From assembly GCA_977020255.1 (NCBI GenBank), contig CDROCS010002070.1, forward strand, positions 1-64,000: 64,000 nucleotides of DNA. The letters run 5' to 3'. The notes under the pieces are model-generated. The model was not told the DNA's origin, made no database searches, and saw only the letters and a list, made by a program, of their open reading frames with translations. Positions 31,965-41,777 of this stretch are shown here, one piece after another. The stretch comes from Obrimoposthia wandeli. Taxonomy: Eukaryota. Positions within the stretch are counted from its first letter, which is position 1. Each line of letters starts with the position of its first letter. Made by a program: the position numbers and the translations under genes.

Positions 31965-32044
31965 TTGACTCATGTCGTCAAGCAATGTCGTCAAACAATG
32001 TCTCAAGCTATGCCATTAACTCATGTCATCAACCAATGTCGTCA
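31965..32044. repeat. Degenerate direct duplication of the last 29 bp of the hydrolase-OsmC gene
   Basis: TTGACTCATGTCGTCAAGCAATGTCGTCA (31965) versus TTAACTCATGTCATCAACCAATGTCGTCA (32016), 26/29 identical. Confidence 0.85.
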
Positions 32045-33227
32045 CCACTTGTGGGTTACTGTGTAATGTTCGATGTACTGGACACCTATCTGCGATCTCC
32101 ATTAATCGTGTTTTTTCGGCATCACTCAAGGGGCCTAACAGCTGCACTTTACGAATTAATAATTCTATTTTTTGATTCGGTTCCGTCACATTACTGGCAT
32201 CTTTTATATAATCACGCTCGTGAGATAAAGATACTTCGACATGCTCGAGGGGGATCTTCTTATGATCCGCATACATACGAATTGTCATCGCAGTACAGGC
32301 ACCTAAAGCAGCCAATAAATGTTCATAGGGATCGGGCCCTGTATTTTGGCCTCCGACTTGTGTTGGTTCGTCGGCATACCAACTGTGGTGGTCACTGAAA
32401 ACGGATTGCTGAAATTTATGGTCGAGTTCCGCTACCGTAATGTGCCCTTTGGTTACTTGGGGACGCGATATTACGGCGACTGGGATATAGCGGCTTGCCC
32501 ATCCGGAAATCGTTTGCGCAACATATTCACTGTCGATTGATTTTGATAACAGATGATCGGCAGTGTCTAAGCTAACAAAGCTTTTAGGATGCTTGGCCGC
32601 TTTATAGATTTTCTCGGCATCTGCAATATCGACAGTTAAATCGATGGGAGAATGCAATACCAGCAACGCCTTATTCAGATGCTGTATATGCTCTGTCGTT
32701 TGGTTACGCAAATCATCTATAAATTGTTTTTTAATCGTGAACTCACGTGGGCCCAAACTCACTTTTGCACAGCCGTTTTTTTCAATAGTATCGAGGTGGG
32801 CATCAAAGTTGTGTATGACATGGCTTGCTTCAAACGGTGCCGCAATGGTCACCACTGCTTTTACTTTTGGCAGTTTACCTGCCATCGCTAACACGGCAGC
32901 GCCACCGAGACTATGTCCGATTAATAGTTGTGGTGCATCATAATGCTGTTCAAGAAATTCTGCCGCTGCAAGCAAGTCTTCGGTATTGGATGAAAAATTG
33001 GTATTGGCAAAGTCACCGTCACTGTTACCCAAGCCGGTGAAGTCAAATCGAAACACAGCAAAGCCATGTTGCACTAAAAACCGGCTAATTCGCGAGGCGG
33101 CTGCCACATCTTTACCACAGGTAAAACAATGAGCAAATAATACATAGGCTCGTATCGCTTGGTCAGGTGTTTCAAGCAAGCCTGCTAGGTTTTGTCCTTG
33201 ACTCGGAAATTCTACTTTTGTTCTCAT
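32016..33227 (-). CDS. Bifunctional alpha/beta hydrolase-OsmC family protein
   Basis: [26 protein letters not shown]; OsmC part [24 protein letters not shown]. Confidence 0.92.
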
Positions 33228-33502
33228 CGATTTGATCCTAGGTTTATAATAAACACCTTGGAACTAAATGCATCTCACGGTGTTATTACGTAATTAAAAA
33301 GCAATTAACGGTAGTAATTGTATCTGGGATCTTATGAGTATAGTTGTAGTTGCATCGCTAATTTGAACATTAGCTAAAAGACATCATGTATGTAGAAGGT
33401 AAAGTACGGTACAAGAAAGGCGGTGGTGGCATTCTATTAAAGAAAGCGACCAAGCTATAACTTATTTCATTACAGCTTGGTCACGAGCGATATTATTAAA
33501 AA

Positions 33503-34198
33503 TTAGTCACATTTAATACGATATTCTTTATGACTTTTCTTGGTATGTTGCTTGATTGCCTTAAGCACTGTTTTAACTTCTTTTTTGCCGTCTGCTGTTT
33601 GTAATTGCTTAAACAGACCCGTCAATTTTTCAATGCCTTGCTGATAGCCCTGATGCTGCATGTGAGTTTGGTGGTCCATGCCGGGCATATTTTCCATTTG
33701 GCTATGATCCATCGCTGGCATATCTTTATTCATGGCTGACATGTCATGATCCATACCAGGCATATCTTTATTCATCGCGGACATGTCGTGATTCATAGCA
33801 GGCATGTCTTTATTCATGGCAGACATGTCATGATCCATACCAGGCATGTCTTTATTCATTGCGGACATGTCATGATCCATAGCAGGCATGTCGTGATTCA
33901 TAGCAGGCATGTCATGATTCATCGCAGGCATGTCATGATTCTTCAGCTTTACCGGAATCTCATTTCTTGCCTTCATTGAGTTGGCAAGTAACTTCGTTAC
34001 CTGAGCTTGCATGGCCGTGGCATCATTACGTTTAAATGCCGCGACATAGGATTTTAAGTCGTCATTCATCTCTTTCATCATGCCGCTTAGCGCGGTATCT
34101 TCGCAGTGTGTTTCGCCATCATGAGCGAACACCGGCAGACTGAGTGCGGCAGACAGTACTAGCGATCCTGCTATCGTTTTTGTCATTTTGTTTAACAT
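33503..34198 (-). CDS. Periplasmic cytochrome b562-like four-helix bundle with large Met/His-rich loop insertion
   Basis: Signal peptide ..PVFA; LSGMMKEMNDDLK ~ LEDNMETLNDNLK, IPVKL ~ TPPKL, YQQGIEKL ~ FRHGFDIL, SHKEYR ~ YHQKYR of E. coli b562 (alignment from memory). Confidence 0.75.
   Translation of the reverse strand: MLNKMTKTIAGSLVLSAALSLPVFAHDGETHCEDTALSGMMKEMNDDLKSYVAAFKRNDATAMQAQVTKLLANSMKARNEIPVKLKNHDMPAMNHDMPAMNHDMPAMDHDMSAMNKDMPGMDHDMSAMNKDMPAMNHDMSAMNKDMPGMDHDMSAMNKDMPAMDHSQMENMPGMDHQTHMQHQGYQQGIEKLTGLFKQLQTADGKKEVKTVLKAIKQHTKKSHKEYRIKCD
33710..33940 (-). repeat. Eleven coding 21-bp tandem repeats ([N/D][H/K]DM[P/S][A/G]M) with 42-bp higher-order period
   Basis: NHDMPAM x3, then alternating [D/N]HDMSAM and NKDMP[G/A]M x8. 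Confidence 0.95.
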
Positions 34199-34220: not shown

Positions 34221-37200
34221 TTAATTGTCTGTTGTTAATTTTTTATTAGAGGCTGCGGTACTGTCATCATCCTCGGTCATGATCGATTTCAAGCTGAACT
34301 GTTTCCACAGGTAGAACATGGCCGGTAGTACCAACAAGGTTAGCATTAACGCTGAAGCCATACCGCCAATCATTGGCGCGGCAATACGCTGCATCACTTG
34401 TGAGCCAGTTCCTTCACCAAACATAATGGGCACAAGGCCGATGATAACAGTGGCGACGGTCATCATGACGGGACGTACTCGTAAACCAGCACCTTCCATT
34501 ATTGCCTGACGTAATTTGGCTTTAGTTAGCTGGCCAGCTGCAATAGCGGCATCGAGTGATTGATTTAAATAAACCAACATGATGACACCAATCTCAACGG
34601 CAACACCAGCGAGGGCGATGAAACCAACACCGACGGCAATCGAAAAATTATAGTTGAGCAAGTAAAGTAACCAGATGCCACCGATCATCGCCAGCGGTAA
34701 AGTACCCAAAATCAGTAATACTTCACCGACACGTCTAAATGCCAGGTAGAGTAATAACACGATAATAGCGAGTGTGGCAGGGATCACCACCGTTAAGGTT
34801 TCCTTCGCGCGCTGCATATATTCGTATTGACCAGACCAGGTAATAGAATAACCAGCAGGCAAGACGAGTTGTTCCGCCACAGCTTTTTGCGCGTCCAGTA
34901 CATAAGAGCCAAGATCACGGCCTGCGATATCAACATAGATCCAGCCATTAGGACGGGCATTTTCAGTTTTTATCATCGGCGCACCATCTTCAACATAGAC
35001 GTTAGCCACGTCGCTTAAGGCTATACGAGCGCCTTGCGGTGTGATTATCGGCAGTAATTTCATTTGCTCGATGCTGTCGCGGTAGGTTTGTGGATAACGC
35101 ACATTAACCGGATAACGCTCTAATCCTTCAATGGTTTGGGTTACATTCATCCCGCCAACTGCGGTGGATACGACGGCTTGTACATCAGCAATGTTAAGAC
35201 CATAACGTGCAGCTTTTGCCCGCTGTATATCAACCTTAACATAACGGCCTCCGGCGACTCGCTCAGCATAAGCAGAGGTTGTACCTTCAACGTTAAGCAA
35301 TATTTTTTCTATGTCTTTACCAATTTTTTCTATTTCAGCCAGTTTCTCACCCGCTACCTTGATACCAATGGGGGTTTTGATACCTGTGGCTAACATATCG
35401 GTACGTGTTTTGATTGGCATTACCCAGGCGTTGGTGACACCAGGGAACTTGATCAACGAGTCTAATTCTTCGCGTAAACCTGCTGATGTCATGCCGTCTC
35501 GCCACTGATCTTTGGGTTTTAAACTGATGAAGGTTTCTATCATCGTTAATGGCGCGGCGTCTGTTGCTGTTTCTGCACGTCCAGCTTTGCCCCAAACGCG
35601 TTCCACTTCAGGCACGGTTTTGATCAATTTATTGGTTTGTTGCAGCAATTCTCTGGCTTTACCGATACTGATCCCCGGATAGGTAGTCGGCATGTACATT
35701 AGATCACCTTCATCTAGAGGTGGAATAAATTCACTGCCGATCTTGTTTACCGGATAAAAGCCGACGACAAGTAAACCCGCAACCACAAATAACAGCAGTA
35801 AAGGTGCTTTTAAGCTGAATGTTAGTAGCGGTCGATACAGGGCAATAAGACCACGATTAATCGGATTTTTGTGTTCTGGTAGTACCTTACCGCGAATGAA
35901 GTAACCCATCAGGATAGGCACTAAAGTCACCGCGAGTCCGGCTGCTGCTGCCATCGAATAGGTCTTCGTAAAGGCGAGGGGAGAAAACATCTTGCCTTCT
36001 TGTCCTTGCAGTGCAAATACTGGCACGAAACTAAAGGTAATGATCAGTAGGGAAAAGAACAGTGCTGGACCGACTTCGGATGCAGCTTTGCTGATCACCT
36101 GCCAACGATTTTCATCCGTCAACGGTGTTTTTTCCATGTGTTTATGCACATTTTCAACCATCACGATAGCACCGTCGACCATAGCACCAATGGCGATAGC
36201 GATACCGCCTAATGACATGATGTTGGCATTAATACCCTGCCAAGACATGACGATAAAAGCCACCAAAATACCGACGGGTAAACTGATTAAGACCACCAGT
36301 GAGCTGCGGATGTGGAACAGGAATACCGCGCACACGACAACGACCACTAGAAACTCTTCAAATAGCTTTTCGTAGAGGTTTTCTACTGCATTATCGATCA
36401 GGGTAGAGCGATCGTAAGTCGGAACAATTTCAACACCTTCCGGTAAAGATCCCTGCAACGTTTTAAGTTTAGCTTTGACGGCTGCAATGACATCACGGGC
36501 ATTTTCGCTGTAACGCATGACGATGATACCGCCAACAACTTCACCTTCACCATTAAGCTCCGATACACCACGGCGCATTTGCGGCCCGATAACGATGTCG
36601 GCCACATCACCGAGTAATAACGGCGTGCCAGTTGCGCTCAGTTTTAACGGGATGTTTTTCAGATCTTCAATAGAACTGATATAACCATTGGCGCGCACCA
36701 TATATTCCGCTTCAGCCATTTCAATCACACTGGCGCCTGCTTCTTGGTTGCCCTGTTTTATGGCGTTGCTAATGGCAGACAGTGGAATTTGATAACTGCT
36801 TAATTTATCTGGGTCAACGCTGATCTGGTATTGTTTAACCATACCGCCGACCGTCGCCACTTCCGATACACCCGGTACGGTTTGCAGTTCATACTTTAAG
36901 AACCAATCTTGTAGACTGCGTAATTGGCTAAGATCATGATTACCGCTGGTATCGATTAACGCATAGGAATAGACCCAGCCAACGCCTGTTGCATCGGGTC
37001 CTAATGCTGGTTTGGCTGTGCTAGGCAAATTCGGTGTTACCTGAGAAAGGTATTCAAGCACCCGAGACCGAGCCCAGTACATATCTGTGCCATCTTCAAA
37101 AATGACATAAACATAAGAGTCGCCAAAGAAGGAGAAACCACGCACTGTTTTTGCACCTGGTACGGATAACATCGCGGTGGTTAGCGGGTAAGTGACTTGG

Positions 37201-37388
37201 TCTTCAACTACTTGTGGCGCTTGTCCTGGATAACTGGTTTTAATGATCACCTGTACATCGGAGAGATCTGGGATCGCGTCGATCGGGGTATTTTTGACTA
37301 CAAAGCTACCGTAGACAATAATAATAAAGGTCGCTAACAAGACTAGCATCCGATTGTGGATCGACCATTCAATAATGCGTTTGATCAT
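34221..37388 (-). CDS. cusA: CusA-family Cu/Ag heavy-metal RND efflux pump
   Basis: [73 protein letters not shown]. Confidence 0.95.
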
Positions 37389-38914
37389 TACATGTCACCT
37401 TCTACGTCGTCATCATCAAAGTCTAACCAATCCAAAGCGTCATCACTATCAATTTCAGTCTCTGAATTAGTGCTAGTTTCAGCCTCCGTTTTTTGCTGCT
37501 CCATGCCGGAGTGATCCATTGTCGAGTGGTCCATCGCTGCATGGTTCATGGCCGAATGATCCATCGCCATTGCAGGTTGTTGTGGTGATTGTTGTTGCGA
37601 AGAGACTGGATCGATGCGACTAAAGTCTGCTGTTAAGCTAGATTCAGAATCTATCAGGAACTGAGCACTGGTCACGACCTTATTCCCGGCGGCTAACCCA
37701 GCCATAACTTCAACATAACCCGCTGATTCTCGTCCTATCGTAACCCTGACAGATTGATATTGACCGTCGCCTTTGGCCAGTACTACCCGATCAAAATTGC
37801 CAGCACGGATCACGGCTTCGCGAGGTACCTGTAAGCTGGTGGACTGAGTTTGGCTGAGCAATTTCAGCTTGGCGAACATATTAGGTTTTAACTGTTTATC
37901 TTCATTACTAAATTTAACGCGGACTTTCAGTGTTCGAGTCGCTGCGTTTAATTCTGGATAGATGTAATCAATCTCGCCATGCCAAGTTCTGCCTGGGAAG
38001 CTATCAAGTTGCATTTCACCCTTATCGCCGACTTGTACTAAACCTGCTTGCGATTCAAATACTTCAGCTTGCAGCCAGATCTCATCTAACTGTCCCGCTT
38101 CGATGATCTGTGACGCCGGCGTAATGTATGCACCTTCACGTACGCCTAACTTGGTAATAAAACCTGACTCAGGGGCGAAAATAGTTACATTCTGTTGGGC
38201 TTTTCGCTTGCTGCTAATCTGACTGATTTGTGCTTTGTTAATACCGAGTGCAGACAAACGATTTTTTGATGATGAAATTAAGGTTTTATTACCGATACGT
38301 AAGGCATTGAGCAACTCTTCTTGGGCTTTAATTAATTCAGGAGAATAAAGGGACAGGAGCTTTTGGCCTTTGCTTACTTGCTCTCCTGTTTCCTTGATGT
38401 AGAGCTGTTCTATCCAGCCGGATACGCGACTATTAATCTGCCACAGACTGTGTTGATCAAACTCTAGTCGCCCCACTGTATTAATTTGTGGGATAAAAGG
38501 ACGCTGACTCACGGTTTGCGTGCGCACGCCGAGGTTATTTTCTACGCGCGGAGAAATGGTGACTAAACCGGCATCACTGGCTGTTGCTGCATTACCGTAC
38601 ACAGGGACAAGATCCATCCCCATCGGTGATTTACCTGGTTGGTCGCGACGATAACTGGCGTCCATCGGTGCTACCCAGTAAAGCGGTTCTTTTACTACTG
38701 ACGCTGGCACATCGGGATAAACGGGCACCAGATCCATGCCCATTGGTGATTTACCCGGTTGATCACGGCGATAGTTGGCGTCCATTGGTGCTACCCAATA
38801 AAGCGGTGTAGCTTCGGCACTATTAGCAAAACTATCAGCTTGATAAGTTGTAAACCAAACGCCTGCGGCCAACCCGAGGGCAAGCGTAATTGAACTGGCG
38901 ATAATTGTTTTCAT
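37388..38914 (-). CDS. cusB: CusB-family periplasmic adaptor with two N-terminal heavy-metal-binding repeats and Met/His plus acidic tail
   Basis: [27 protein letters not shown] x2; [40 protein letters not shown]; TAATG coupling to cusA. Confidence 0.92.
38597..38806 (-). repeat. Duplicated 90-bp metal-binding module in cusB (120-bp period)
   Basis: Copies at 38597..38686 and 38717..38806. Confidence 0.9.
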
Positions 38915-38922
38915 GAAAACCT

Positions 38923-40179
38923 CTATAATGCTTGAAAGTAACGAATGCGGGCTAATGTTTTTAGACTCTGAAAATGCAGTTGCTGGTACTCCAGCTCTAG
39001 CGCTTGCTCATCCATAAATGCTTTGATTACCTGTTCAAAGTTATTGGTATTGAGCTGATAACCTTGTAAGGATGCTTCGGTATTGCGCTTGGCATGAGGA
39101 AGTAGCGTATCCTGATAGCGTTGCATTCGAGATTCGGTATTCAGAAAATTGGCGATAGCACCGTTTAAAATGCCATTGAATTTAATCAATAGCAGATCTT
39201 TTTCAGCTTTTTTGATGCCCTTGCCCTGAGTGGCCGCGATGACAACTTGGTCTTGGCGATTACCGGTAAATAAGGGGATATTCATGGTTACTGAACCGCT
39301 GAGTAAATCACTGCGCGCCGATCCTGTTGCCATATCTAACGCTTCTCGGTGGCCGTCGCCCACATCGACTTTAAAAGCTGGTTTATAGGATTCATTCGCT
39401 ATTTCGATGGTGTTTTCAGCTACATCAATAGCTTGCTGCGCGGCCAGTACCTGAGGATGGCTTGCTAGAAGTTGATAGTGCACAACCTTACCTTGCTTGG
39501 CATAATCACGGCTTGCTTGCCATTGAGGAATTTGCGAGTCGAGTTGTTCGAAAGCTTGTGAACCAATCCACGCCAGTAGCTGGCCACGTAATGCCTGCTC
39601 TTGTTGGGCGAAGGCCGCAATTTTGTCGTCGAATTTAGCCAGCTCTAGTTCGGCATTGATAAGGTCTTGATTTTGCTTATAACCGAGCTCAAATTGACGG
39701 TAGAGGTTGTCTACATTCAATTTAAATAAGGCTTGGTTTTTTTGCAAAATTTCTTGAGCAAGTTTGGTAAAGCGAATATCAAACCAAAGTTCTCTGATCT
39801 TTAGTTTTAGCTCTGCTTGACGGTTAGCTGACAGCTGTACGCTTTGCAGTGCTTGCAGGTTGAAATTGTTGGCGTTTAACGCGAGTGTATCGCCGCGAGA
39901 AAATTGTTGTGACATACCAATACTAAACTGCGTCATGGGATCGTCAGTTAACGAGAAGCTGTCTATTGGTACATTCGCTAAACCGAGTTTTATCATCGGA
40001 TCAGTCAGTTGTGATGAACTGATCGCTTGCGCTTTAAAACGGGTCTGCTGAGCAGTGTAGATCTGGGCTGTTGGATCGCTTTGCAGGGCGAAGTTTTCCG
40101 CTGCAGATAGCGTTAACAGCTGAGCATTAACATTAAATGTAAATAACGTTAATAGCCCAAAATAAATTTTGGATGGCAT
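38923..40179 (-). CDS. TolC/CusC-family outer-membrane efflux channel
   Basis: Signal peptide; DPMIKLG..NVP, DPMTQFSIGMSQQFSRG, HPQV, SVTMNIPLF; first structural gene before cusBA. Confidence 0.87.
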   Translation of the reverse strand: MPSKIYFGLLTLFTFNVNAQLLTLSAAENFALQSDPTAQIYTAQQTRFKAQAISSSQLTDPMIKLGLANVPIDSFSLTDDPMTQFSIGMSQQFSRGDTLALNANNFNLQALQSVQLSANRQAELKLKIRELWFDIRFTKLAQEILQKNQALFKLNVDNLYRQFELGYKQNQDLINAELELAKFDDKIAAFAQQEQALRGQLLAWIGSQAFEQLDSQIPQWQASRDYAKQGKVVHYQLLASHPQVLAAQQAIDVAENTIEIANESYKPAFKVDVGDGHREALDMATGSARSDLLSGSVTMNIPLFTGNRQDQVVIAATQGKGIKKAEKDLLLIKFNGILNGAIANFLNTESRMQRYQDTLLPHAKRNTEASLQGYQLNTNNFEQVIKAFMDEQALELEYQQLHFQSLKTLARIRYFQAL

Positions 40180-40187
40180 TTTTATTC

Positions 40188-40229
40188 CTTATTAATTGAT
40201 TTTTAAAATAATTAAAATCAACCAATAAG
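40188..40229 (-). promoter_or_regulatory. 16-bp hairpin sequestering the cusC Shine-Dalgarno
   Basis: mRNA CUUAUUGGUUGAUUUU (40229..40214) pairs with AAAAUCAAUUAAUAAG (40203..40188) using two G-U pairs; SD AAGGA at 40190..40186. Confidence 0.7.
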
Positions 40230-40613
40230 AGGGGGACGATATAAGCTTTCTGGATGTTGTTCAGGGAGAGGGGCAGGGAAATACAATACAGTCGTTGTTT
40301 GATCTTGACTGGCAACGATTAATAGATTGGTGCTGATAAAAGGCAGTGAACTGGCGGTGCTACAATCACCATAATTGCACATGTCACAATTACTTTCGCT
40401 CATCGCGGTAAGATGATTGCTGGTTGACGTATCATCCATGTGACAAAGATTGTCTGTGTTCTCGTCTAAATTGCCTCGCATCATTCCCGGCATCATTTGC
40501 ATGTCACACGGAATATTTGCAGACATAACGTGGCTGTTCATTGCCTGAAGAGGTAATGAAAATGAGTTTATTAATAATAATAAAACCAAAGCCAAAGCGC
40601 GCATGAAAGACAT
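40218..40613 (-). CDS. Exported Cys/Met-rich leader protein ending YRPPLIG (DUF2946/CutF-like)
   Basis: Signal peptide, CDMQMMPGMM, CDMCNYGDC, Pro-rich C-terminus PAPLPEQHPESLYRPP. Confidence 0.7.
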   Translation of the reverse strand: MSFMRALALVLLLLINSFSLPLQAMNSHVMSANIPCDMQMMPGMMRGNLDENTDNLCHMDDTSTSNHLTAMSESNCDMCNYGDCSTASSLPFISTNLLIVASQDQTTTVLYFPAPLPEQHPESLYRPPLIG

Positions 40614-40766: not shown

Positions 40767-41138
40767 GTGATGCTAATACCAAGGCGTGTAATTAAGGTGA
40801 TCTGTCTGTTGCTAGTGAGTATTGTACTCTCGAGCCAGCTTGCCTATGCGCCACTTTCTGCCCATGAACGGTCAAATAACATTGCAGCCATCGATAATGC
40901 GATGCATTGTGATGCCGGGCAGATGATGGCTAACAACGCAAAAGATAACTGCTGTGATTCTTTGGAAAGTAATATTGAAAATAAATGTTGTTTCTCCAGT
41001 GCGACCACAAGTTATGCCATTATTTCATTATCCTCTTTGAATGCACGTCAGCCTTACACACTAAGCCTGATTAATCGTGATCCATCTAAAGCTAGTTTTA
41101 CTATCCCTGCTCTCTTGTATCGACCTCCCATCGTTTAA
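40767..41138 (+). CDS. Second exported Cys-rich leader protein ending YRPPIV (DUF2946/CutF-like)
   Basis: Hydrophobic signal, MHCDAGQMM, NCC..KCC, C-terminal PALLYRPPIV. Confidence 0.7.
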   Translation: MMLIPRRVIKVICLLLVSIVLSSQLAYAPLSAHERSNNIAAIDNAMHCDAGQMMANNAKDNCCDSLESNIENKCCFSSATTSYAIISLSSLNARQPYTLSLINRDPSKASFTIPALLYRPPIV

Positions 41139-41336
41139 TATTCCTTGTACTACACCACACATACGTTTGTTGCTTAATCTATTAATTTCGATATCAATAT
41201 TGATATCGACATAGATGAGGGAACATAGATTAAAAATGTGCAATCGATGTCAAAAATAGACCGATTGAACTAATCTATAAACAAAGTGTGCTGGCTATCC
41301 AAATTAAGTAATACTTCGAAATTTAAGGAATTTAAG
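41134..41336 (+). promoter_or_regulatory. Structured intercistronic RNA with anti-SD/SD long-range pairing
   Basis: UUUAA(U)AUUCCUUG (41134..41147) pairs with UAAGGAAUUUAAG (41324..41336); nested CACAC..TTTGT/ACAAAGTGTG, TTAATCTAT/ATAGATTAA and perfect 22-bp palindrome 41188..41209. Confidence 0.5.
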
Positions 41337-41777
41337 ATGAAAACGATTATCCAATTGATTGCCATATTATCACTCACATTTAGTGCAGTTGCATTCGCCA
41401 AACCGACGATTGAATTATACAAGTCACCGTCATGTGGTTGCTGTGTAGCATGGGCAGATATCATGGAAGAAAAAGGCTATAAAGTGAATGTGCATCATCA
41501 ACGTGATTGGTCAGCGGTGCAGAAGAAGTTCGGCATGCCGAATAATTTACAGTCTTGCCACACGGCGGTTGTTGACGGTTATATGATTGAAGGGCATGTG
41601 CCAGAAAAGGACGTAGCACGTTTACTTAGCGAACGACCGAGTGATATTACCGGTCTTTCTGCTCCAGGTATGCCGCAGCATTCCCCTGGTATGGCTGCAC
41701 CAGGCCAGGACTATAAAGACTTTAACGTTGTTGCGTTTGATAAAAATGGCAACTTGAGCTTATATAAAAAGTATTAA
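41337..41777 (+). CDS. DUF411/CopG-like periplasmic metal-binding protein
   Basis: YKSPSCGCC..W, SCHTA..GY.IEGHVP, APGMPQHSPGM. Confidence 0.88.
   Translation: MKTIIQLIAILSLTFSAVAFAKPTIELYKSPSCGCCVAWADIMEEKGYKVNVHHQRDWSAVQKKFGMPNNLQSCHTAVVDGYMIEGHVPEKDVARLLSERPSDITGLSAPGMPQHSPGMAAPGQDYKDFNVVAFDKNGNLSLYKKY

Follow-up and report, generated by a model that had tools for sequence, protein, structure and literature searches.

Cytochrome b562 of Escherichia coli (CybC; PF07361; PDB 256B) is an exported four-helix bundle of approximately 100 residues, with an axial Met in helix 1 and an axial His in helix 4. It is a much-used model protein, employed in folding studies, in metalloprotein design, and as BRIL fusions for receptor structures, and we know of no physiological role assigned to it. 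Here, we describe a gene for a related protein, named b562L, located in a 64,000-nucleotide stretch of DNA (contig CDROCS010002070.1, positions 1 to 64,000, of assembly GCA_977020255.1, deposited under Obrimoposthia wandeli), hereafter referred to as the window. b562L is the last gene of a Moritella copper-efflux (cus) unit, recurs in marine bacteria, and, judged by its sequence, fold, and ligands, the protein is a genuine member of the b562 family. It shares with E. coli b562 the four-helix bundle, the two axial residues, and a pocket matched in kind, and is predicted to be exported as well. It differs from it by a 100-residue Met/His insertion, an N-terminal H-x-x-H-C motif, a C-terminal Cys, and a fixed place at the end of the cus operon; E. 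coli b562 itself has neither a Met loop nor a Cys pair. On balance, we lean towards reading b562L as a periplasmic haem-b protein that collects Cu(I) and Ag(I) for the CusCBA pump and possibly reduces Cu(II) with quinol-derived electrons.

Other described systems resemble b562L in part. CusF (PF11604) is a beta-barrel with a single site; like CusF, b562L is a small exported protein of a cus operon that probably binds Cu(I)/Ag(I) through Met and His residues and serves CusB and CusA. In contrast to CusF, b562L has an unrelated fold without a sequence match, many potential sites, and a probable haem, its gene follows cusA rather than lying between cusC and cusB, and it co-occurs in four lineages with a CusF domain fused to CusB. 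Regarding PcoE, SilE, and the Met-rich 'MDH' inserts of CopA/PcoA/CueO-type proteins, the likeness lies in disordered Met/His/Asp-rich stretches with M-x-x-M, H-x-M, and MDH-type spacing, and the tail of CusB in the window carries the same kind of motif. However, in b562L the array is a loop within a folded cytochrome-type domain rather than a free peptide or a portion of a multicopper oxidase, and no homology was detected among Pfam matches at E up to 1. Csp copper storage proteins, whose bundle core is lined with many Cys, and CopM, a DUF305 protein, are also helical bundles that handle copper, whereas b562L has only two Cys and no DUF305 match at E up to 1, and its copper would sit on the disordered loop instead of in the core. 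Finally, in systems composed of a cytochrome b561 and a periplasmic partner (CybB; LcoA-BcnA, PMC9113575), the gene for a di-haem membrane b561 is situated directly beside that of an exported partner, as in some relatives of our locus, and electron exchange with the quinone pool is therefore implied. The partner described here is a b562-type cytochrome rather than a lipocalin and is attached to a metal efflux operon, which in the window lacks b561.

In the published full-text literature, we found no description of a b562-type protein tied to cus or to a Met-rich loop, in line with the preliminary description of this locus, made from the sequence alone, which had called the pairing one not known to its author. 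Both building blocks are known, while the pairing of a haem protein with a metal pump of the resistance-nodulation-division (RND) type appears undescribed. Public records label the looped proteins 'copper resistance protein CopA', whereas the loop-less ones appear there as 'cytochrome b562', 'cytochrome c', or hypothetical; the present assignment corrects this recurrent 'CopA' mis-annotation.

Architecture and family membership of b562L

The preliminary description had presented the product of the gene as an exported helical protein ending the cusCBA unit, and our analysis bears out the helices and the place of the gene and predicts export. The N-terminus resembles a signal peptide, four helices are predicted, the b562L start lies 22 nt past cusA with an AGGA box upstream, and a terminator-like hairpin begins 19 nt beyond the stop codon. 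The 22-nt spacing and the downstream hairpin with its T-run make b562L the last gene of the unit, whose order is small131-cusC-cusB-cusA-b562L. In the profile alignment, the N-terminal hydrophobic stretch and the V-F-A site line up with the signal peptide of E. coli b562, which suggests cleavage at this position. Met41, His223, Cys32, and Cys230 were located by script in the 231-residue translation at the residues first reported, and the C-terminus reads ...SH223KEYRIKC230D. The repeat claim was likewise reproduced: a scripted count gave 11 in-frame heptads (77 residues with 22 Met and 7 His) followed by DHSQMENMPGMDHQTHMQH. The heptads comprise NHDMPAM three times and then alternating DHDMSAM, NKDMPGM, NKDMPAM, and NHDMSAM. 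Since Tandem Repeats Finder detects the array in the DNA itself (33704-33941; period 21 with 11.3 copies, or period 42 with 5.7 copies at 87% matches), it is far beyond chance. The AlphaFold2 (AF2) model contains four confident helices (residues 36-56, 60-88, 176-201, and 205-225) with a predicted local distance difference test score (pLDDT) of about 90 and leaves residues 88-162 disordered, so that the repeats are located between helix 2 and helix 3.

The b562 assignment rests on relatives of b562L because the window protein alone matches PF07361 weakly. A word-indexed search returned 22 close homologues of 177-224 residues from Moritella, Agarivorans, and metagenomes, differing chiefly in repeat number, and each of the 23 close sequences reaches E <= 0.01 against PF07361 (lowest value 1.2e-6). 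A repeat-free paralogue of 142 residues, encoded just upstream of the cus operon in a Psychromonadaceae metagenome-assembled genome (MAG; L012:656-1081), covers the whole PF07361 model with 52.7 bits and aligns with b562L by BLASTP in two segments (43% identity over 68 residues, E 2e-14; 44% over 57 residues, E 3e-14). When this paralogue was searched against 1.84 billion representatives, 61 clusters were retrieved, mostly loop-less proteins of 139-153 residues; about 15 carry Met/His inserts at the same place. Just three columns are invariant among 44 loop-less representatives (mean column identity 32%), namely the helix-1 axial Met, a Pro equivalent to b562 P45, and the helix-4 axial His; the near-invariant ones comprise two Cys, one Leu, one Tyr, and two Lys. 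The loop-less profile aligns with full-length E. coli b562 (E 6.7e-10, residues 1 to 128), and in this alignment the axial Met corresponds to Met7, the Pro to Pro45, the Tyr to Phe61, and the axial His to His102. The window family and the loop-less family were in turn aligned by hhalign with a probability of 99.96% (E 3.7e-39), the repeats forming a single insertion between helices 2 and 3. The alignment of both ends with E. coli b562 had first been made by eye; the hidden Markov model alignments agree with it in putting M41 on Met7 and H223 on His102. Thus, while the window protein by itself is sub-threshold in Pfam, its close homologues, the loop-less paralogue, and the profile-profile alignment establish the family.

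The haem pocket points in the same direction. The b562L equivalents of the E. coli pocket residues are L37 (L3), M41 (M7), M44 (L10), P82 (P45), Y185 (F61), G188 (G64), I189 (F65), K220 (R98), H223 (H102), Y226 (Y105), and R227 (R106). Most of these positions are invariant in the 23 close homologues, including the equivalents of b562 L3, L10, F61, G64, and R98, with Y226 and R227 varying. In the loop-less family, the equivalents of L3, L10, F61, G64, R98, Y105, and R106 are conserved in kind. The axial Met and His are invariant in the 23 close and 44 loop-less members, and no intact protein from the 40 species loci examined below lacks them.

At the level of predicted structure, the best Foldseek matches of the loop-less model (pLDDT 88.4) are b562 entries, with template modelling (TM) scores by target of 0.78-0.82, root-mean-square deviations (rmsd) of 2.3-2.6 A, and E values of just 0.04-0.2. 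For 256b_A, the TM score by target is 0.78 and the rmsd 2.5 A over 111 columns; cytochromes c' rank next. The window model is also a four-helix bundle but is not discriminating on its own: Foldseek returned no match at E <= 0.001 in PDB or Swiss-Prot models because the 75-residue disordered loop spoils the alignment. Likewise, phmmer with the window protein against PDB sequences gave coiled-coil and repeat noise only, the close-family profile gave marginal b562 matches in PDB (E 0.03-4), and hhalign of the b562L family against the six canonical b562 genes of the assembly gave a probability of 4.7%, over the C-terminal half only, because both alignments are too shallow.

Four other assignments were considered and rejected. 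A c-type cytochrome would require a CxxCH motif, which b562L lacks; a Cys-lined Csp storage protein is incompatible with only two Cys; CusF membership fails on the lack of a PF11604 match at E up to 1 and on the all-helical model; and for PcoE/SilE, no such Pfam or NCBIfam match was found at E up to 1, the resemblance being compositional only.

Cys32 and Cys230, a possible staple of the termini according to the preliminary description, sit a few residues outside helices 1 and 4, at the haem end of the bundle. Both are near-invariant. Every intact protein from the 40 species loci has the two of them, five diverged representatives have neither, and a full-length member with a single one was not encountered. 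Because the pair is kept or lost together, as a disulfide predicts, we infer a Cys32-Cys230 disulfide that closes the bundle. H26, H31, and C32 are invariant in the 23 homologues, and the H-H-C pattern occurs in 37 of the 40 species loci. With a His as its first residue, the mature chain recalls the Cu(II) sites of CopC-type proteins, and by this analogy its N-terminal H-x-x-H is a possible Cu(II) site.

Occurrence of the Met/His loop and its relation to cus and CusF

To describe the distribution of the family, 401 species genomes of the order were searched with the profile, and the neighbours of 40 retrieved loci were labelled; the family is present in about 40 of these genomes. A class-wide sample had been too sparse for this purpose (8 of 401 genomes). 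A Met-rich loop (42-130 residues, 9-31 Met) was found in 25 loci in addition to the window, all situated directly 3' of cusCBA. Four more cus-linked loci, also 3' of cusCBA, have a short loop of 27 residues without Met, and two contain incomplete genes at the same place, which brings the cus-linked total to 31 of 40. The nine remaining loci, located elsewhere, have loops of 15-36 residues with 0-2 Met; Met-rich members are confined to cus operons in this sample. The complete order small131-cusC-cusB-cusA-b562L also occurs in Moritella dasanensis ArB 0140, Moritella sp. JT01, two Moritella MAGs, and the Psychromonadaceae MAG, while in Agarivorans the same gene order is followed directly by a b561 gene (PF01292). 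A tblastn search with the loop-less paralogue against 72,556 plasmids gave no match, and thus there was no sign of plasmid carriage for this paralogue.

In a tree built on the core columns, without the loop, we count at least 4 changes in the Met-loop state and 5 in cus linkage, and short-loop non-cus genes are nested among Met-loop cus genes. The length of the repeat unit varies by lineage (7, 10, 13, or 14 residues), and the copy number differs even among near-identical strains: 11 in the window, 10 in M. dasanensis (L008) and in P0001, and 8 in L088. Nearly all Met loops, however, finish with a related M.GMDH.THM.H or EQHHQHM segment right before helix 3. Related endings combined with lineage-specific units suggest one old Met/His site that was later enlarged by in-frame slippage. 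These expansions constitute a natural loop-length series for studying how copper capacity scales.

Some individual loci deviate from the common pattern. On C506, a 3.78-Mb contig of the same assembly that belongs to a different Moritella-like bacterium, the same operon is found at 2158957-2165800 (L007, L014), with a b562L of 163 residues, a short Met loop, and a PF07361 score of 27.8 bits. The cus-linked gene at L094:7977-8684 (+) contains a (K/D)-rich KKDKKD run inside the Met/His loop, starts with D-S-C instead of H-x-x-H-C, and is followed by a second cusB-cusA pair. Two cus-linked copies are broken. The one at L012:7950-8375 (+), in the Psychromonadaceae MAG, ends after helix 3, and its profile match crosses an internal TGA; the one at L083:7531-8291 (-) is divided into two open reading frames (ORFs), and its cusA is split too. 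Both may represent real decay or assembly errors.

Regarding CusF, the preliminary description held that no cusF is present and that the b562-like protein replaces it. The first point stands: among the 12 places where Pfam CusF_Ec matches the assembly, none is on the window contig, and an iterative search with the CusF-like domain was blank in the 30-44 kb region of the window, where CusB also lacks a CusF domain. The second holds in part. In most cases, including the window, CusF is missing where b562L is found. Four lineages, namely the Psychromonadaceae MAG, Agarivorans (L015 = L077), L070, and L075, nevertheless combine the same b562-like gene with a CusB that bears a fused CusF-like domain; no other cus-linked locus does so. 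Since these four lineages pair the two, b562L is better described, on present sequence comparisons, as an additional accessory than as a strict CusF substitute. In Moritella, b562L is found where the CusF domain has been lost and CusB bears a Met/His 'MDHS' tail.

Proposed function and competing explanations

CusCBA is selective for Cu(I)/Ag(I) and works with a periplasmic chaperone (PMC6235853). A combined collector and reductase is favoured for b562L because this pump takes Cu(I)/Ag(I) only and normally needs such a chaperone. The disordered Met/His array between helices 2 and 3 is a putative multi-site Cu(I)/Ag(I) binder, and b562L would be a dedicated accessory of CusCBA. Binding and delivery of Cu(I)/Ag(I) by b562L seem quite probable; occupancy by haem b, suggested indirectly by the conserved ligands and pocket and by the b561 neighbours, is only a little less so. 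The coupling of Cu(II) reduction to efflux is a tentative proposal that we hold with some doubt. In the complete scheme, periplasmic copper, mostly Cu(II) in oxic sea water, would be bound near the haem end, with the N-terminal His-x-x-His as the candidate site. The ferrous haem would then reduce Cu(II) and regain its electron from quinol by way of a membrane cytochrome b561; the gene for this presumed donor adjoins b562L in some relatives, whereas in Moritella it would be one located elsewhere in the genome. The resulting Cu(I) would be captured by the Met/His array together with the conserved MPGMDHQTHMQH segment and passed to CusB/CusA, which export only Cu(I)/Ag(I). The potential of E. coli b562 is about +170 mV, and if the haem of b562L were similar and Met coordination raised the copper couple, electron flow from quinol through b561 and the b562L haem to Cu(II) would be downhill.

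The neighbouring genes provide further evidence on the redox part. b561 proteins cooperate with exported periplasmic partners (PMC9113575), and a b561 gene (PF01292) adjoins b562L in 9 of the 40 loci, five cus-linked and four not. When the Agarivorans b561 was modelled together with three haems and mature b562L, the predicted complex scored 0.42 in each of three runs, whereas the best control scored 0.02; contacts agreed to at least 89% across runs, and the partner pLDDT was at least 65. Of 78 solved complexes, 51 attain the score mark, as do 2 of 108 mismatched pairs, and passes at or below 0.60 are more often wrong than right unless the pair is likely beforehand, which it is here because the genes are adjacent. 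The model therefore lends weak support to a b561-b562L complex. Together, the b561 neighbours and the predicted complex independently support the redox idea. DUF411 (CopG-type) genes are found beside b562L in L056, L086, L088, and L090, and also near the window operon.

Two loci concern the same redox neighbourhood. At L056:6316-8946 (-), where there is no pump, genes encode a small exported Cys-rich protein, a loop-less b562L, a c-type cytochrome (CSACH), DUF411, and cytochrome b561, an operon whose predicted products make it look like a self-contained periplasmic copper-redox module. At L097:882-2112 of M. dasanensis (G001:C4), a 158-residue exported helical protein with a weak match to the b562L profile (E 7.8e-4) is encoded divergently from another b561 gene. 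The pairing of b561 with four-helix cytochrome-like proteins may thus be more general in Moritella.

A wider reading would make b562-type cytochromes periplasmic one-electron shuttles between quinol-linked b561 and metal ions, with the Met/His-loop subfamily acting as a quinol:Cu(II) reductase that feeds an RND pump. We regard this generalization as rather unlikely, although, if true, it would make this the first metal efflux system to depend on haem and to be coupled to redox, and would point towards the role of E. coli b562. More modestly, a sister subfamily of b562 tied to copper efflux, b561, and CopG offers a testable hypothesis for the cellular job of b562, and a new, probably redox-active Cus accessory could explain how a Cu(I)-only pump copes with Cu(II) in oxic, cold sea water.

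Several observations weigh against b562L as a haem-dependent collector and reductase. Alone, the window protein reaches just 18.7 bits (E 0.0027) against PF07361, below the 30-bit cut-off and over residues 37-90 only. In VIA-align, the window model matches designed bundles (Z 12.6) better than b562 fusions (Z 10.7), and the predicted fold alone would not have assigned the protein to the b562 family. The association of the Met loop with cus linkage, striking in counts, is not statistically proven because there are only four independent contrasts, of which three go the same way, none the opposite way, and one is a tie (sign test p 0.25). In a diverged metagenomic subclade with big Met loops, both Cys are lost, and three of the members (P0058, P0067, and P0074) are devoid of the axial His as well; because of these three members, copper binding may persist there without haem. 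The window operon has no adjacent b561 gene; M. dasanensis has six b561 genes elsewhere in its genome. The downhill argument leans on the potential of E. coli b562 and not on that of b562L. Finally, a cell that generates periplasmic Cu(I) runs a risk.

Some of these observations would also suit a haem-free bundle. In that case, Met41, His223, His26/His31, and MPGMDHQTHMQH would bind copper directly, and the array would be a passive Cu(I)/Ag(I) sponge or chaperone, analogous to CusF, PcoE, and SilE, without electron transfer. Met and His serve as ligands of copper as well as of haem, the three Met-loop proteins named above dispense with the axial His and both Cys, b561 is missing beside the window operon, and the Met loop follows cus linkage rather than b561 linkage. 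However, a copper-binding apoprotein would not readily account for the conservation of pocket positions that do not bind metal (b562 L3, L10, P45, F61, G64, and R98), nor for loop-less members outside a copper context that retain Met and His and adjoin b561. In addition, b561 follows five cus-linked members, and the predicted b561 complex passes, if weakly. We therefore consider a haem-free protein unlikely.

A haem of opposite or protective function appears less probable still. Here, Cu(I) would be oxidized and its electrons passed to quinone via b561, as in an oxygen-independent analogue of CueO, or the Met-rich sites of the pump would be guarded from copper-driven oxidation. CopG, described as interconverting Cu(I) and Cu(II), has relatives of the DUF411 type among the neighbours, which would fit such a function. 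Moreover, E. coli CybB, a b561, is reported to pass electrons from a periplasmic donor to ubiquinone (cited in PMC9113575), and the Met residues of CusF are oxidized under copper stress and need repair (PMC9302797). Against oxidation, Cus pumps export Cu(I), and oxidizing the substrate beside its pump makes little sense. Met-rich sites stabilize Cu(I), and on grounds of general chemistry the transfer of an electron from Cu(I)-Met to a haem of the b562 type is therefore expected to be uphill. As for protection, no Msr-type partner turned up in the loci, whose labelling was aimed at cus, b561, and DUF411 genes only. That b562L is a decaying or accessory passenger, its array a fast-evolving low-complexity expansion without a specific role and its operon linkage a matter of shared ancestry, is highly improbable: repeat number and unit type do vary among close relatives, and broken copies exist (the split L083 gene and the L012 post-cusA copy with its internal TGA), but the frame is preserved in every expansion (units being multiples of 3 nt), the Met/His content is maintained across differing unit types, the core is strongly constrained (44 invariant columns in the 23 homologues), and Met loops are absent from the 40-locus sample whenever the gene lies outside cus.

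Operon features and genomic surroundings

The coordinates of the b562L gene, its segments, and the associated genes are collected in Table 1.

Table 1. Features of the b562L gene and the cus region in the window.
Feature	Position	Strand	Evidence
b562L gene: 231-aa exported cytochrome b562-family protein with Met/His repeat insertion	33503..34198	-	ORF and homology
Predicted signal peptide, residues 1-25, cut after V-F-A	34124..34198	-	Sequence reading (hydrophobic core and A-x-A-type site)
Mature N-terminus H26-D-G-E-T-H31-C32 (motif H-x-x-H-C): candidate Cu(II) site and first staple Cys	34103..34123	-	Conservation; metal role inferred
Helices 1-2, residues 36-88, with axial Met41 (codon 34076-34078)	33935..34093	-	AF2 helices 36-56 and 60-88, pLDDT about 90-96
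Eleven 21-bp (heptad) Met/His repeats, residues 87-163	33710..33940	-	Script count and Tandem Repeats Finder
Conserved non-repeat Met/His segment DHSQMENMPGMDHQTHMQH, residues 164-182, abutting helix 3	33653..33709	-	Near-invariant in 23 homologues
Helices 3-4, residues 176-225, with Y185/G188/I189, K220, and axial His223 (codon 33530-33532)	33524..33673	-	AF2 helices 176-201 and 205-225, and alignments
Cys230, putative disulfide partner of Cys32, closing the haem end of the bundle	33509..33511	-	Near-invariance of both Cys
Intrinsic-terminator-like hairpin and T-run closing the cus unit	33446..33484	-	16 pairs, 6 G-C, tail TTTCTTTAAT
cusA, RND pump, CusA/CzcA family	34221..37388	-	TIGR00914 1285.8 bits; 99.7% identity to Moritella dasanensis
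cusB adaptor, two N-terminal HMBD repeats, C-terminal Met/His tail, without CusF domain	37388..38914	-	PRK09783/HlyD_D23 matches; tail from translation
cusC outer-membrane factor	38923..40179	-	Position; 65-96% identity to related cusC; PF02321 on Agarivorans orthologue
small131, first gene of the unit: 131-aa exported Met/Cys/His-rich protein, no known family	40218..40613	-	No Pfam match
DUF411 (CopG-type) periplasmic copper protein, operon neighbour	41286..41777	+	PF04214 89.2 bits

The adaptor CusB (37388-38914, -) bears tandem HMBD repeats (PF19335) at residues about 36-100 and, at residues about 445-508, the 'MDHS/MNHA' Met/His tail, followed by a strongly acidic end. At the position of this tail, the relatives from Agarivorans and the Psychromonadaceae MAG have the fused CusF_Ec domain instead. 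At the other end of the unit, small131 was detected as the leading gene in 15 of the 31 cus-linked species loci and in all six related loci. A second small exported Met/Cys/His-rich protein without a known family is encoded at 40767-41138 (+), divergent from the cus unit and ahead of the DUF411 gene (41286-41777), and both it and the small131 product (40218-40613, -) finish in ...LYRPP(L/I). Directly downstream of the cus terminator, the gene at 32016-33227 (-) encodes a 403-residue alpha/beta hydrolase (Hydrolase_4) fused to a C-terminal OsmC domain.

Regarding the origin of the DNA, the assembly comprises 1.35 Gb in 6,912 contigs and includes several different bacteria; the six canonical b562 genes and the twelve CusF domains are located on other contigs than that of the window. 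With a CusA 99.7% identical to its counterpart, the window contig is, by sequence comparison, that of a Moritella close to M. dasanensis ArB 0140. Near-identical DNA is also present in food, ice, and marine metagenomes.

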